This document shows, one piece after another, positions 33,593 through 59,013 of a stretch of DNA of 64,000 nt (its first letter is position 1; every line of letters starts with the position of its first letter). The stretch comes from Bigelowiella natans CCMP2755 (Eukaryota; Protista; Cercozoa), in the NCBI GenBank assembly GCA_000320545.1, contig ADNK01001780.1:20440-84439 (forward strand). The letters are read 5' to 3'. The notes below the pieces were generated by a model that saw only the letters and a program-made list of their open reading frames with translations, did no database searches and had not been told where the DNA came from. The translations under genes and the position numbers were made by a program.

Positions 33593-33636
<44 letters not shown>

Positions 33637-33876
33637 AGCGACGACGACAACGACGATGATAGTTGTTCAAGATTGGGCATGGGTCGATACTTTTGAGGAA
33701 CTGAGGGAAGAACCCAGTGATACTTCTGTATTGCCAAATACGGTGACCCGCCGCCTTGAGTTTCTTGTCATGTTCTGGGTTTTGAATAGAAAACGGGCTG
33801 AAGAATAATTACGACTGCCGTCTCCTCCTCGGCGAAGAAGGGCGCGTTTGAATCGTCCGAATCCCATTAGAATCAT
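29306..33876 (-). CDS. TMEM65: TMEM65-domain protein fused to a GAF domain containing two inserted EF-hands; probable mitochondrial presequence; multi-exon, start approximate
   Basis: TMEM65 core: PTVTQMRIHGINCAIPM|IGFGFMDNLVMIQAGDIIDNSIG|VTFGLTTLTAAAFGQ...SDVSGVCFGGVIEQFAAK...AVGVVIGCFLGMVSLLFMDLDK. GAF: LFDTLVRDGRRILGAQRCNLWLV...KIPIRKGGAKHT|VLTTGKVVNI...GYDTFSVLLVPVVVEDPKRVIGLIE|FANK...FNETDEKVAILLA. EF loops: FDRYDDDHSNTLNAENL and ESDICFEEFSELI. TAG at 29306-29308. Confidence 0.88.
31960..32045. repeat. Compound (GC/CA)n(AC)n(AG)n microsatellite in a TMEM65 intron
   Basis: Directly visible. Confidence 0.95.
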
Positions 33877-34467: not shown

Positions 34468-37400
34468 ATGGCGGGAACGAGGAGTAGAAAAGAGACTCCC
34501 TCAAAATCAATAAAAAGTAGGCAATCTAATATGAAAGACAAGCCTTTTTCCCTAATTTCTCGCTCGAACGGATGAACAACTCAAAAAAGCGTGCAGCGTG
34601 CCCCCCTCGGAATTAAGAGCAGTTTGGCTTTTAGAGAAACGCAGAACCTGCCCCCATGGCTAACAATGTCCCCTCGGGTCAAGTGGTAGGCTGGATGTTG
34701 GATTATGCCTGCCACCAGAACCTGTATCCCCTGATCAAAATCTGCAATTCTCTTCTCCGCGACTACAAGCATGAGTTCAAGGCTTCAGGTAGCTTGAATT
34801 AACTTTTGATAAAACGCTTCTTCCACCCACTGGCTCTTCTCCTCAAAGTCATAAATATGTTTTCAGAGAGATGTGAGCAGAATCTCCTCTTGTGCGCCTT
34901 CACAAACGTGATCCAAAACCGAGGAGACTTTGAGAGAATGGGGCCGACGGACGTCTTGGAACTCTTTCTTATGCTACTACCAGGTATGGTGGTTGAGAAG
35001 AAGGATTGGGACTAGCTACCTCATTGTCTTTCCTTCATGAATCACATAGAGCTTCCTTCCCTTCTTGGAAGCACGTAATCTTTTCATTAGGGCGTTCATT
35101 GTTTCTAAAATTTTCGTCATCCTATCAGAAAGGAAGAAGCTGAAGTACAAGAAAGTTGCCGCGAGGGTTTGTCTGGAAATAAAGAGGCAGGTTGTAATGA
35201 TCATCGGGATCCTGACAGAATCGCATCCATTCGTAGCCACAGCATGTTATTTTTTAGAACTACCTGTTATAACCCCGATGCCTCCTTTGAATAAGTGTGA
35301 CAACTAGCACCTCTACAGGTTTTTCTGGTAAGACTTTCTAGACGCTCCGCGAGCAGGGATGAAATGATTGAGCTGTTGGAGACTCTATTTCCGCTGGAGG
35401 TAGCTTAAAGCAGGCTGAAAGCATATTGCTACAAATATAGTAGTTTATTAAATCGTGTTAAATCATCCTTGAATTGAATTTTGGTCCAAATGGAAGCGTA
35501 TCGCGCAGTAGTTATATATTTATGGACATCTCAACCAAATGTACATGTAACACATCATAAAAAGGACCATCGCCAAGGGAACAAGCGAAGACGAGGAGGG
35601 CAAGATGGAGCAACAGCATTCTTCAATAAGTACCAAAAATTGATAGGAGTCGTGCCGCACAGCAGAGAACAAAAGACGAAAATGGAGTTACTTGAGTTGA
35701 TTTATCTGGCTTATGGAAGGCTATCATCGTCATTTTCGGGCAGATTTGATGTCTATATGGAAAAACATGCTTATAACCGATTCCAAAAGTTAGTCACTGC
35801 TTTTCTTAAATCCTTCATACTGCCAAGTCTCACTCCATATATTGTGGAGAGGGAGATAAAAGGTGGGTCAGTGCCATCCCCATCGTCATCACCCGGAGGA
35901 AAAGAAGAAGAGCGAGGAGAGGTAGAAACGCGAATAGGAGCAGCGAGTAAGCGAAGGAGAAATTCTGCAATGACGAAGACGACGACATCGGCATCAGTAT
36001 TCAAAGAGCAGCAGCAGCAGAAAGTGCGACGACGAGGAAGAAAGAGAAGAAAAATAGAAGAACAGGAGCAGAAGGAGGAGGAGGGAGAGGAAGAAGAAGA
36101 AGAAGATGATGATGATGATGAAGAAGAACGGAAGGAGGAGGAGGAGGAAGAAGAAGAAGAAGAAGAAGAAAGGGAGAAGAAAGTAAGCGAAGATGAGGAA
36201 TATGAACAGGAATCGGAGTATAATCCAAGTGATGATGATGATGAAGAAGAAGAAGAAGAAGACGATAATGATCTCGAGGATATGGAATATGGTATTTACC
36301 GTCGTCAAAGCAGCCGCCGCAGCAGTCGCCGAAACAGCAATCACCGTAGCTATCGCGAAAATCGTCGGTCTATTTCTCGAGCTAGGAGAGCAAATCACCA
36401 AGCTAAGAGGAGGAGGAAGGACAGACATCAGCAGCAGGAGCACAACAAAAGGAAAAAAGGCGCCAGAGAAGTGATCATGATAGACGAAGAGGAGGATGAG
36501 GAAGAAAATGAGGGGGGGAGGCAAGATACTGAAGAAGAGAAGGGCGAATACAGTGACGACGATGAGGATGAAAAGGAGGTGCGACAGATCTTGATAATAT
36601 TTCACTTTACTAAAACGAAATTACCACAATATTCAAGTCAGCGATAATTTTGATTGGTGATTTCTATCTAGCGGGGGGGGGAAGTCATCCTCACTGCTGG
36701 TGTTGTTGCTATTCTGCTATCATGCTCATGTATTTGACAAGGACAGCGTCGTCGATTCGTAGATTGAGTTGCGTGCATGTTTCAAAGGGGAATTTGGAAG
36801 TAGACACCACGAACAAGAAGGGATTTACGTAGTAGTGTGCAAAAGATGATAGATCTCGCATCTCTCTGCCCTTCCCTCTTTTGTAGGAAGATGATTCCGA
36901 TGAGGTGATATTAGCCACTTGCGATCTACGAGCCGGTGAGCTTGTTGCGGTGCCTTCAGCAGACAACGAAGCCGACACGCCATTCTGGGTGGCAAAAATC
37001 ATTAAGATTAATCAGCATGGTGCAAAGGTACCTGTCGCACGCACGCACGCGCGCGCGCGTGTGTGTGTGTGTGTGTGTGAGCTTGTGTACCTCGCGAGTA
37101 CTTCCTTCTGCATCATGCTTGTTCGAACGGAATCCTAGCATTCCTTGGAATCTGCAGCGGTTGTTGATGCCATTTTTGTTATTCATTCCTTCATTCATAT
37201 TTTGGAAATTTGTCTCGTCCACTTTCACAGGTTCAATGGTATGACTCCGACAAGGCGTTCGGCAGGTATACGCCTTGCTATAGCGACAAGAGGAAGAAGG
37301 AGCCATGGATCCAAAGGATCCCAAACCGCACCACCGTCATCACATCTGGTTTCCGCCTCAATCGCACTGGTTACCTTTCGAAAAAGACCTCAGCGACGAT

Positions 37401-37479
37401 CAAGGCCCACCGAATGGTGCGGGATTTTTACAAAATGAGTGAGGAGGAGGGGGATGGGAAAGTCAGCCAAGTCTACTAA
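34468..37479 (+). CDS. Putative chromatin protein: TRF-homology (TRFH)-like N-terminal domain, long acidic/basic linker, C-terminal Tudor/PWWP-like beta-barrel; multi-exon
   Basis: ATG 34468 (MAGTRSRKETPSK). Exons: VVGWMLDYACHQNL...|ERCEQNLLLCAFTNVIQNRGDFERMGPTDVLELFLML|...VCLEIKRQVVMII|...DEMIELLETLFPLE|...FDVYMEKHAYNRFQKLVTAFLKS. Then a poly-E/D linker, then LRAGELVAVPSADNEADTPFWVAKIIKINQHGAK|VQWYDSDKAFGRYTPC...GFRLNRTGYLSKKT. TAA at 37477-37479. The gene itself is well supported; the domain labels are by-eye. Confidence 0.7.
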
Positions 37480-53784: not shown

Positions 53785-56700
53785 TTAGTTCGACGCTCCA
53801 TAAATCTCGAAAACCTTTTTCAATTTGACAACCAATTTCCAGTCATCTGGCTGCAAATCACTCCTGAAGTTCTCTTTCAATAGCTTGATGGACTCTCGAG
53901 AGAGCCTGCTCACCATGTTCTGACTAGCGTCGAAGTGGCGTCCAAGTAGGATAACTTGGTTGCCTCTATTTTGTTCGATTTTGATGCACACTTGCTCACC
54001 TTTCTTAGCTTCGTTACGTTCCTTGTGCTCAAACTCAATACTCGTTACTGATCCAATATCAAGAATCGGCTTCTTGTCTGGAATGCAGAGTGGCGTACCT
54101 TTTCGTAAAATACCCTCCATGACCTCAACACCAACGACAATAGGACTCCTCTTATTGAAGATGAACTCGGGAATGATCCGAAGTATACAGGGGAAGACAG
54201 CTCTAGGAGCAGCCTCAGCACGCCTCTTTGCCTTCACATCTTCGAAATACTTGGTTACCATATCAAAGAGATGGTATATAATGTCTGCGGAGAAAATTGT
54301 GACCCCCATTTCGTTTGCCATTTGTTTGGCCTCAGGAGAAGCGGTGACGTCGAATGCTAAGATGACCGCATACTCTTCCCGTCGCTCGAGCATGACTGCA
54401 GCCTTCATAACGTCCTTTTTGTTCACGGGCCCGATAGCGACGCCGGAGACCGGGACCTTCATGTCTTCGAGGAACTGCAAGAGTGCCTCCAAGGATCCTA
54501 ATGTACTCGCCTGCACGTAGACTCCCTGGCCTGAGGGGTCGACCCTGGTCAAAATTGATGCAAGATCCGCCATACTTTCATCCTTCAGCTCCTCGATATC
54601 GTCGTTTTTCCCGCACACGAGCAGTTGCGTTCCTGCCACAGCATGATCCAACCCGTTTGCCGTAATCTTGACACCCATAGCTGCCTTGATCTCCTTATGA
54701 TGAACGTACTCGGATTTGACTCGTATCTCCTTCATGGGCGGAGGAGTAAGTAAGGCCCTTATTGTTGTTACTATTGGTCCTTGTAATCCGCACACAACGA
54801 TGGTATCTCCCTCGTGAAGAACGCCATTGACGAGTACGACATCGATGGTGGTTCCAAGGCCTTCGACCTTCTTCACCTCGAGCACAGTGCACTGAAGGTC
54901 AGTGTAGCTCACCGCGATTTGATCCCGCATAAAGTTTTGTGTCATCTTGACGAGCAACCACAGAAGGTCTGGAATCCCTTCACCTGTATGAGCTGAGGTA
55001 GGAACGAGTGAGGTCCATTCCTTGGGGTTCTTATTCTTGTAATACAGGACCGTGTTGAGCTCAGCTTCCTTCGCAAACTCGGCGATGACCTGGTTTGTAC
55101 GGGTTTCGAATTCCTGCTGGACATGTTTTTTCTGCTGTTTTAAGGAGTCCCGGACTGGACCATTCGGCGTCGATTTCCACTCATAGAGCCGATCGACTTT
55201 GTTGAGGGCAACAACGAATGGGGTACCCCTCTCTTTTAAGAGGCGGATAGATTCCAATGTTTGGGGTTCTAAACCATGCATTAGGTCTACCACCAATATA
55301 GCAATATCGCAGAGATTGGAACCACGAGCACGAAGATTTGTGAAACTCTCGTGACCCGGAGTGTCGATCATGAGAAGGCCAGGCATCTTCGCGTTAAGAG
55401 CTTTGCCTGTGCTTGCAACTAGCTGTGCAGTAGCCTTTTCAATGTTTGTCATAGGGAAATAAGTCGCACCAATTTGCTGTGTGATCCCTCCTGCTTCTCT
55501 ATCCTGAACATTGGTACTTCGCATCTTATCAAGAAGCTTAGTCTTTCCAGTGTCCACATGCCCCAGAATGCAGCAAATCGGGCTTCGAAGCTCGCGGGTG
55601 TCCTTATCTTTCCTGCCTTTCTTCCCCTTTTTGCCTTTCTTGCCCTTCTTACCCTCCTCCTGTCGAAGCTTTTCCTCTGCTGCTTTCTTTTCCGCTTCAG
55701 CCTTCTTTTTCTCCTCTTCGGCTTTTTTCTTGGCTGCCTCTTCCGCCGCCTTCTTAGCCTCTTCTTCCTTTTGCCTCTCCTTCTCGCGTTCTTCCTCAGA
55801 ATCTACATCTGCAGCAGCTTCCCAGTCATCCTCACCATCATCATTAGCATCTGCCTCCCAGTCATCATTGTCATCTGCCTTGGCCTCCTCCTCCTTAGCT
55901 GCAGGTGCGGCTGCTGCTGCTTCCTCTGCGGCAGCCAATTCCTCAGCTTTTCTCCTAGCAGCCTCAGCCTCTTGAATGGCCTGCATCTTTGCAGATACCT
56001 TTTTATTCCCACCTAAAGAAGTGATTTTAGTTATCAATCCCGTTCATTTCTTAAAGCAGTCGTGTCATTGCATATGATGATGTTTACCTCTCCGGCGGCG
56101 GTCGCGGTCACGTCGAGGCCTGTTGTTTGTCTCTTGAGGAACTCCACCAGATTTTTCGAGGCGCTTTCGAGCCAGTTCCAACCGTCGCCTCTCCTCCTTC
56201 TGCTTCTTCGTAAGAATAAGACCTTGTTTTTTCATTTCTAGTCTTTTTCTCTTCTTCTCTTCTTTCTTACGGATCCTTTCTTCCTCCTTACGCCTCTCTT
56301 CTTCCTCGGCCATGCGTTTTTCTTCCTCTTTTCTCCTTTTTTCTTCCTCCACTTTGCGTTTTTCCTCATCTTCCAGGCGCTTGCGTTCCTCAAGCAGTTT
56401 TTGCAATCTCTCTGCCTTCTTCTTAGCTTCTTCCTCATCCTTCAGCCTTTTCAGATACTTTTTCCGGGCTTTTTTGGACATCTTGGATATGTCTACCTCG
56501 CCATCGTCAGGTTCCGCCTTATCAGTTACCTCAGTATCACCTTTCTCAGCTGCCTCTCTTTTAGCTTTTTCGGCTGCCTCTTTTTGCCTCCTCCGCTTGA
56601 GCTGCGCCTTCGTCAATTTCGGTTCGCCTTCTGGTTTAGCTTGAGCAAAAGCAGCAAAAGGGTCGTCATCGTCGTCAGCTTTCTGTTCCTTAGGTACTGA

Positions 56701-57709
56701 CTGATTACCGTTTGATTTCTTTTTCTTTTTCTTTTTCTTTTTAGGCTTGTCGTCAAAATCCATAGCGTCGAAGTCAGGAATTTCAGGTTCCTGCTTCCCC
56801 TCCTCCGCCGCTGCATCGGTCTTGCCTGCATCCCCTTCAGTTGTGACTTCCTCTTCCCCATTTTTGGTAGCTTCCATCATAGCTTTAACTGCTTTGATAA
56901 CTCGCACGGCTTGTCCTAGTTTGATTCCCAAACCTTTGTAATCGTTCTTATCCATCTCATAGAGATCCTCATCATCAAGACCTTCAGCCTCGAGAGTCGC
57001 AATAGTTTTGTCGTCTACCTTGAACTCCGTGGCCTTTTCTCGAAGTTTAGGAAGTTTCACATCTTCTGCAGCGAGCGGAGCTTCCCCTTTCACTGCCCTA
57101 ATCACCCTTGCTGCTTGATCCGAGGAAAGACCCATCCCTTCGAGATCATCTTGCTCCAGATCAGCGACGTCCTCATCAGCAAGGCCCTCATCTTCGAGTT
57201 TCTTAAACGCGTCTGCAGTAATACCATGGGCATATGCCTTAGCCCGGAGATTCTTCAAAGGAGAGGAATCCTCGATCGGATCCCCACGAACTGCGCTCGC
57301 GACACATTTCGCTTGTTGTTCGCTGAGTCCCATTTCCTTAAGGTCATCTTCTCCCAAATCTTCCAGATCCGCATCCTCCAGACCTTCCCCTTCAAGAAGA
57401 GTGAAAGTTTCAGTCTCAATTTTATACGCAGCTGCCTTCGATTTAAGCCCGCCAAGTGGACCGTCTTGCTTCTTCTCTATCTGCTTTTCTTCCTTTTTAG
57501 GCTTAGACTTTTTCTTCTTGCTAGAGACTGGAATTGCAAATTCATCGTCGATAACCGCATTGGCTAATGGGTCGAAGTCGTCGTGGTCGTCTTTCTGAGG
57601 ACGGGAGTTACCCTTTTTCCCTTTTTTCGATCTGTCCAAAAAGCACAATCTCACCTTCTGCATGGCATGGGTATTAGAACTGGTGTTCTTCTTACTTTTT
57701 TTTCGGCAT
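53785..57709 (-). CDS. EIF5B: Eukaryotic translation initiation factor 5B (IF2 homologue), three exons, with three SAM-like repeats in the N-terminal region
   Basis: MPKKK|SKKGKKG start (ATG 57709, intron about 57695-57633) and a second intron at about 56087-56013. G-domain motifs: LRSPICCILGHVDTGKTKLLD, EAGGITQQIGA, DTPGHESFTNLRARGSNLCDIAILVVD, NKVD. Domains II-IV are intact. TAA at 53785-53787. Confidence 0.98.
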
Positions 57710-59013
57710 CTTGTAAAAATGTACGTAGCGGTGGTCTTCTTTTCCTGGTTTCCGGTGGTCTTATTCGTATCAAAATGATCATACACAAATTTGCAAAGTC
57801 GGTTCCTGGTGGACACGCGCTTCCTTTGTCCTCGTTGGCCTTTTAGAACACACAGAATAAATGAGGATTGGGTGTCCTGTCCAAACTCTACATACTCAAG
57901 CATCTCTAACCCTGAATCAAGTACCTCTTTGTTAAAAGATTTGCTTCAATTAATCTTCCCGGGTGGTGAAGTTTGGTGCGAGGGGTGGGTTATGCCAACA
58001 CTAAAGGAGAAAGTTCAGCGCAATATATATTTCACCGTAAAAACAGAGCCATATATGTATTGTTGAACATTAACTGTCCAAGTATTTTTTTGAAAACATT
58101 TGCGAATTCTAAGTCGCAAATTAAATTTAGAGATACCTTTTCGAAATCCATGGAAATAGAAGACTGCAGCTATTCTGGAAGGAAGAACCATCGGGAGAAT
58201 TCCTGGATTTATTCATCAGATTACAAGGTTACACAAAAAACATGATAGGGTTTGTAATATACAATACTCTTAGCTACGGAGACCATTTATATGATGGTTA
58301 CGTGGAGAAATCATCTGATTTTAACATGTTTTGAAAAAGAATCCATCTGAATTAGTCTTTTATTTTATTGCCTGATTTCAGTGGATTTTGATGCAAGTTA
58401 ACTTTTCGGACTATGAGGTTGCAAAAGAAAGGAGGAATCCATCGGACACAGCTTAATCGAATGAATTCGGTCCATGCGACGATGCTTTGATCGCAGAAAT
58501 ACAACATACGCCTCTCTCAATTTCGCCGGACTCAGAAACCAAGCTTATCTTTTCGCCAGCGACATCCACAAATGACACATTTTGCCCCTTCATTTGAATC
58601 CCGGTGTTTTGAGCTAGAAATCACGATTTGCACGTACGTCGTCAATTCCTGATGCTGCTTTATTCATGCTGTGCGTAGTGCCTCCTAAAAATCGAAAGAT
58701 TAGAGGCGCTTTAGACAATTATTACATCGAGAAATATCCTAAAATAATTCGCAAAGTCAATCTGAGTCGACTGAATTTCTCGCTGGTATCGATACCTTCG
58801 AACAACAGCACGACTCTCCAAGGTTCCAAGAATCCAGTGGAGGGAGAGCGCACCGGCACCCACACCAGCCCCTATAGATAGATAACCCCGACGAGCTCCA
58901 TCGATTATCTCCCACCGTCGCCGGAGGAGAACTAGAGCTAGAGATAAACTTGGGGGGAGCGCAGTCCTTGGAGATTGTGCCTGGAACGGGATCCATTTTG
59001 CCCTGATCAGAAG

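Follow-up and report, generated by a model that had tools for sequence, protein, structure and literature searches.

A 64,000-nucleotide stretch of the Bigelowiella natans CCMP2755 genome (assembly GCA_000320545.1, contig ADNK01001780.1, positions 20,440 to 84,439, forward strand; hereafter the window, whose own numbering is used below) carries a seven-exon gene on the + strand at 34656-37479, encoding a product of 598 amino acids (aa). B. natans is a chlorarachniophyte (Rhizaria), and the gene is real, expressed and nuclear. Our reading, to which we assign a probability of roughly 0.6, is that the product is a ~600-aa chromatin-associated scaffold, in which a highly diverged TRF-homology (TRFH) domain is joined through a linker to a barrel of the BAH/Tudor/chromo-barrel class that replaces the Myb/telobox domain. 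The absence of a Myb domain and the layout of the protein are conserved in two species.

The second species is another chlorarachniophyte, Amorphochlora amoebiformis, whose full-length orthologue (P0002, GAB5356117.1; 562 aa) is annotated as "hypothetical protein AAMO2058_000263500". When 1.84 billion representative proteins were searched exhaustively by phmmer, residues 1-215 matched only this orthologue (E 1e-17) and a fragment of it; a transcript-derived copy of the same protein (P0004) was also recovered. Searches for homologues by word matching added no members to the family, and two metagenome scans, with B. natans exon 7 and Amorphochlora residues 452-562 as queries, found no relatives of the barrel. 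The two proteins align by blastp in both domains (B. natans residues 1-225 against orthologue residues 1-199, E 8e-30; C-terminal domains, E 4e-16) and share a ~215-aa, predicted all-helical N-terminal domain, an acidic and then basic disordered linker, and a C-terminal barrel. This layout of helical domain, charged linker and small beta-barrel agrees with the TRFH-like domain joined to a Tudor-like barrel without Myb that had been proposed from the letters of the window alone (hereafter the sequence-only reading). The linker holds acidic tracts and basic runs resembling nuclear localisation signals (NLS), including the Arg/Ser-rich run RRQSSRRSSRRNSNHRSYRENRRSISR, and the C-terminal ends correspond (...SQVY in B. 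natans, ...SQSY in Amorphochlora). When the Amorphochlora cDNA was aligned to its own genome, the first four exons proved nearly equal in size in both species.

Some features of the locus are particular to one species. A basic insertion, DHRQGNKRRRGGQDGATAFFNKYQKLIGVVPHSREQ, is specific to B. natans (residues ~132-167, 35565-35700) and sits after the FP(L/P)E motif and before the last helices of the N-terminal domain; ~25 of its residues are missing in Amorphochlora. The Amorphochlora gene (within BAAHQB010000018.1, 681587-698605) has nine exons over ~5 kb, and its barrel is uninterrupted by an intron, whereas the B. natans barrel is intron-split. It neighbours a WD40 gene and a VEFS-box (Suz12-like, PRC2) gene, and both lack a counterpart in the B. 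natans window. Compared with the window by tblastx, the flanks of the Amorphochlora gene gave zero matches, so the two loci are not syntenic.

Pfam detected no Myb domain in the B. natans transcript product (P0001, described below) or in the orthologue, and a motif resembling a telobox is absent from all six frames of the 64 kb window. The orthologue cDNA stops directly after the barrel, reading ...SQSY-TGA and then the 3' untranslated region (UTR), and the counterpart in the window is ...SQVY-TAA. We rejected a missed Myb exon on these three grounds, namely the empty Pfam scans, the lack of the motif in the window and the closure of the orthologue open reading frame (ORF) before its 3' UTR. 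Because the Amorphochlora exons match and the ORF stops into the 3' UTR, the architecture is conserved and complete, with no Myb exon overlooked. A canonical TRFH-Myb gene was seen in neither B. natans nor Amorphochlora, and the exhaustive phmmer search gave no paralogue.

The N-terminal domain (residues 1 to ~225; 34656..35846, + strand) is supported by blastp against the orthologue and by sub-threshold Pfam matches to TRF. For B. natans residues 63-131, the top Pfam match was PF08558 (TRF), covering profile positions 92-158 of 239 with scores of 20.1-21.7 bits (E 1.7e-4 to 6e-4), the best of which, 21.7 bits, was obtained with residues 1-140. TRF was again the top family for orthologue residues 149-194, this time at profile positions 185-226 (E 0.018-0.065, 13-15 bits). 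The two matches fall in different alignment columns, are collinear, and have a consistent spacing on the orthologue alignment. In addition, orthologue residues 140-215, searched by phmmer against 177,635 distinct PDB sequences, matched four chains only, all of them human TRF2 TRFH (3BUA, 1H6P, 4M7C and 3BU8) and all with an E of 0.83 that is insignificant alone. The match covers chain residues 142-195, which lie as far from the domain start as the matching residues of the query do. The HMMER alignment of TRF2 and the orthologue has the common pattern K-x-R-x-DLL … Q-x-F-x-Y-x-x-FQ-x-x-M-x-x-(F/Y)-L … P-(F/Y)-L, and the TRF2 segment aligns with the orthologue region that corresponds to the sixth of the blocks by which the sequence-only reading had recognised TRFH. 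An AlphaFold2 (AF2) model from a three-sequence alignment predicts an all-helical domain, with eight helices in ~215 aa, at a predicted local distance difference test (pLDDT) of 48 and a predicted template-modelling score (pTM) of 0.34. Taken singly, the matches are all short of significance. Chance is nevertheless hard to invoke, because one family in ~25,000 comes up again for separate segments, in two diverged orthologues and at the right positions. Judged from these alignments, the N-terminal domain is probably a TRFH homologue, with support that is convergent but sub-threshold.

Several results weigh against this kinship. The best PF08558 score of 21.7 bits lies below the curated Pfam gathering cut-off of 25 bits, and because this cut-off was tested and missed, we do not count the protein among the Pfam TRF family. 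The middle part of the orthologue matches INTS15 (E 0.0018), rve and Mso1 in Pfam, not TRF, so an E near 1e-3 can be chance for helical sequences of this kind. No tool matched the strongly conserved block PSGQV(V/I)GWMLDYA ("GWMLDY") at the N-terminus, and the two- and three-sequence orthologue profiles reach no TRF chain in the PDB. The TRF2 match described above is also insignificant by itself. Foldseek and VIA-align searches with the N-terminal model returned generic helical bundles only, and these searches are uninformative because of the pLDDT of 48. The phmmer searches of the PDB with the whole domain and most of its sub-pieces were set aside, having given nothing or noise (a TetR regulator, FAM175B, a designed repeat protein, a capsid protein, GST and haemoglobin). 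Pfam scans of single exons gave nothing because the pieces are too short. The term "TRF-homology-like", used in the sequence-only reading, is probably right: PF08558 ranks first twice and the PDB match is to TRF2 only, but the score stays below the cut-off and no profile-to-PDB match was obtained.

The N-terminal domain might instead be helical, lineage-specific and without kinship to TRFH, with TRF matches that arise from chance likeness between amphipathic helices, in which case the protein would be a nuclear scaffold with a barrel and no shelterin link. Every TRF match is sub-threshold, other families reach similar E values on the orthologue (INTS15 at 0.0018), two-sequence profiles miss both TRF1 and TRF2 in the PDB, the model with pLDDT 48 lends no structural support, and with two known members only, a deep homology would be untraceable. 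Nevertheless, one of 24,736 Pfam models ranks first for two non-overlapping parts of two diverged orthologues, collinearly and with the right offsets, and one piece searched against the whole PDB finds TRF2 TRFH chains exclusively. Since chance does not predict such agreement, we hold an unrelated domain to be possible but rather unlikely.

We modelled the C-terminal domain from orthologue residues 440-562, aligned with the two B. natans exons. In B. natans the domain occupies residues 483-598 (36926..37476, + strand), as delimited by blastp against the orthologue, the AF2 model and the structural matches. The model (pLDDT 62, pTM 0.58; 51 residues with pLDDT of at least 70) consists of a five-stranded barrel followed by two helices, and the barrel is of the five-stranded SH3-like type seen in the Tudor/Royal family. 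VIA-align against 48,161 PDB representatives, with a re-examination of the Foldseek top 1000, gave Z scores of at most 6.3. Among BAH domains, the matches were DNMT1 BAH1 bound to H4K20me3 (Z 6.3 over 77 residues, with a root-mean-square deviation of 2.9), SHL and EBS (Z 6.2-6.3, 81 residues), and BAHCC1, AIPP3, ZMET2 and ORC1 (Z 5.3-5.7, 76-83 residues). The remaining matches were the PHF1/PHF19 Tudor domains (Z 5.9-6.1, 56 residues), the SMN Tudor domain and the MRG15/Tip60 chromo-barrels (Z 5.5-5.7, 58-76 residues), Spt5 KOW (Z 6.2, 65 residues) and UBE2O (Z 5.8-6.2, 55-61 residues). Foldseek on the same model reached a best E of 0.01 and gave the SMN Tudor a probability of 0.99. Pfam scans of the orthologue C-terminal pieces and the window exons returned weak matches to SH3-like families alone (KIF2A_1st at 0.018, MSSS and DUF3104) and none to the BAH hidden Markov model (HMM; PF01426).

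The modelled fold supports an SH3-like barrel of the Royal-family/BAH type, as a fold class only and without family membership. "Tudor-like", the term chosen in the sequence-only reading, is fair as a name for the fold class seen by AF2, Foldseek and VIA-align, but it has no HMM match behind it, and BAH-like fits the model slightly better over its full length. The aromatic strings PFWVAKI, VQWY, FGRY and PW, on which that term was based, are encoded by exons 36887-37027 and 37231-37479, and the orthologue preserves them. Eight aromatics are conserved in both species (W503, W519, Y520, Y529, Y533, W542, F557 and Y564 in B. natans numbering) and are candidate methyl-lysine/methyl-arginine cage residues. 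The barrel could also be a nucleic-acid- or protein-binding module of the KOW/SH3 type rather than a methyl-lysine reader, with a role in RNA processing or transcription elongation, as the Arg/Ser-rich linker run RRQSSRRSSRRNSNHRSYRENRRSISR might suggest. We consider this unlikely, as the BAH alignments are the longest (77-85 residues versus 56-65), histone-reader domains predominate in both structural match lists, and the eight conserved aromatics fit a cage, although a role in the core is equally possible for them.

TRFH domains homodimerise and dock partner peptides, as in TRF1, TRF2, Taz1 and TbTRF. If the N-terminal ~215 aa are a highly diverged TRFH, they would form a homodimerising and peptide-docking module, and dimerisation through it would present two barrels to chromatin. 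The paired barrels may engage a modified histone tail or a nucleosome, and the TRFH-like surface may dock partner proteins. A dimeric nuclear scaffold, with NLS-like basic runs supplied by the linker, would be the most economical model. One could go further, in the direction taken by the sequence-only reading, and propose a true TRFH that has lost its Myb telobox and become fused to a methyl-lysine-reading barrel, so that a histone mark, and not TTAGGG, would recruit the dimeric hub to (sub)telomeric or other heterochromatin; we regard this extension as doubtful.

Lastly, a Myb-less TRFH paralogue that pairs or competes with a canonical TRFH-Myb telomere protein, acting as a natural dominant-negative with the barrel as a second tether or recruiter, is improbable, as no such canonical gene was seen in either species, the exhaustive phmmer search gave no paralogue, the conserved barrel and long linker suggest a function of their own, and TRF1 and TRF2 are not known to heterodimerise with each other. 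What speaks for it is the TRFH-like architecture without Myb, together with the behaviour of Myb-deleted human TRF1 and TRF2, which still dimerise via TRFH and strip the wild-type protein from telomeres (PMC8402208).

The scaffold reading places the B. natans protein beside several known systems. Like the TRFH domains of TRF1 and TRF2 (PF08558; 1H6O, 1H6P and 3BUA), its N-terminal domain is predicted to be all-helical, has ~200 aa and comes first in a protein that is probably nuclear; TRF is the best Pfam match for two collinear segments, and the segment with the conserved Y-x-x-F-Q-K motif matches TRF2 TRFH chains only. It differs from the TRFs in a Pfam score below the cut-off and in a ~25-aa lineage-specific insertion before the last helices; its F/YxLxP docking and dimerisation are putative. 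It also has no C-terminal Myb/telobox, the domain through which every characterised TRF binds duplex telomeric DNA (PMC8402208). For the barrel, the apt comparison is with the BAH methyl-lysine readers, namely DNMT1 BAH1 with H4K20me3 (7LMK), plant SHL/EBS, BAHCC1 and ORC1. From the Tudor and chromo-barrel domains of PHF1/PHF19, SMN, MRG15 and Tip60 it differs in that no HMM match exists, the known domains span the model core only, and the cage is a candidate only.

TRFH also occurs in S. pombe Taz1, yeast Tbf1 and Trypanosoma TbTRF, and to our knowledge it is paired with Myb in every characterised protein (human TRF1/2, Taz1, Tbf1 and TbTRF). In the literature searched, nothing linked TRFH to Rhizaria, and of the publications that mention both TRFH and Tudor, none is about such a fusion according to title and abstract. 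If the TRFH homology is true, the protein would represent a new architecture for a known module and would add Rhizaria, a supergroup with next to no known telomere proteins, to the range of TRFH. It would be a concrete candidate for asking whether chromatin marks can aim shelterin-like scaffolds. Recruitment by a histone mark, if true, would offer Rhizaria an epigenetic means of end-protection or silencing, with TRFH as an ancient, re-usable module. If the kinship fails, the gene would encode an unannotated chromatin-type protein confined to two species, of modest interest.

The gene model combines cDNA blocks, GT-AG sites and reading frames. The JGI transcript contig L001 (1749 nt) maps to the window as spliced blocks with 98.6-100% identity and proves junctions 1-4, splicing exactly at four GT-AG introns. 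Junctions 5-6 and 6-7 lie outside the cDNA and are based on frame, canonical splice sites and homology. The 5' UTR, as far as L001 reaches, spans 34591..34655 (+), with L001 nt 1-198 identical (100%) to 34591-34788 and the first cDNA ATG at 34656. This ATG is the real start codon, in agreement with the orthologue N-terminus (MSNPSGQVIGWMLDY). The start that the sequence-only reading had placed at 34468 was rejected, as it opens a 35-aa ORF ending at 34575, upstream of the cDNA 5' end at 34591. This ORF (MAGTRSRKETPSKSIK..., 34468-34575, +) lies outside the coding sequence; it may belong to a longer 5' UTR as an upstream ORF, or have no significance.

All seven exons lie on the + strand. Exon 1 (34656..34788; MANNVPSGQVVGWMLDYAC...) contains the start codon, ends at a cDNA-confirmed GT donor, has a nearly identical N-terminus in the orthologue and carries the block most strongly conserved between the two species. 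Exon 2 (34867..34983; …CEQNLLLCAFTNVIQNRGDFERMGPTDVLELFLMLLP) has cDNA junctions with AG/GT sites and an Amorphochlora counterpart of about equal size. Exon 3 (35129..35190; …KVAARVCLEIKRQ) corresponds to L001 nt 309-380 and ends at the donor CAG/gttgta, earlier than the sequence-only reading had assumed. Exon 4 (35319..35399; VFLVRLSRRSASRDEMIELLETLFPLE) is bounded by cDNA junctions and is 81 nt long in both species. Exon 5 (35565..36578) encodes the end of the helical domain (…FDVYMEKHAYNRFQKLVTAFLKSF…) and then the acidic and Arg/Ser/Lys-rich disordered linker; the cDNA covers its 5' junction and the sequence up to 36122, and its 3' end (GAG/gtgcga) was placed from frame and GT-AG alone. 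Exon 6 (36887..37027; …GELVAVPSADNEADTPFWVAKIIKINQHGAK) holds the start of the barrel and was located by tblastn of orthologue residues 451-478 and by its AG/GT sites, at a junction without cDNA. Exon 7 (37231..37479), found by tblastn of orthologue residues 482-562 (E 4.5e-10), encodes the rest of the barrel and the two C-terminal helices and ends with the stop codon TAA at 37477-37479.

This exon structure bears on the strings and the six collinear TRFH-like blocks quoted in the sequence-only reading. All of the strings are present in the + strand translation where they had been placed, but the splicing and the start needed correction. Blocks 1, 2, 3, 5 and 6 are exonic and collinear, whereas half of block 4, "LEIKRQVVMII", is intron: the coding part is "LEIKRQ" plus V, "VMII..." is read-through into intron 3, and the mature protein goes on with VFLVRL, which aligns to IILCKY of the orthologue.

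A word-based protein search linked the largest ORF of the locus to one 317-aa JGI protein (P0001), encoded on L001, and the searched protein collection held no model of the B. natans gene besides this transcript fragment. L001, an MMETSP/JGI contig that represents the 5' half of the gene, is chimeric past nt 1016, where a GAT-repeat join leads into an unrelated transcript (nt 1017-1749) with a (GA)n end. The 317-aa product is therefore artificially truncated, and, because the sequence beyond nt 1016 is a chimeric join, L001 is uninformative on the 3' exons.

Two microsatellites were noted at the locus. One, (CG)n/(GT)n, is inside intron 6 at 37040-37080. The other, an ATG/CAT trinucleotide run that reads as poly-Met or poly-His, lies upstream of the gene at 33593-33640.

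Elsewhere in the window, an intronless 750-aa ORF at 53785-56037 (- strand) codes for the GTPase core of eIF5B. Its identity to JGI Bigna1/92617 is 100%, and its next-best matches, which include MMETSP and Amorphochlora sequences, have 82-87% identity. Directly upstream of it, a 612-aa ORF at 56065-57903 (- strand), with no Pfam match, probably represents the N-terminal, low-complexity portion of the eIF5B gene.

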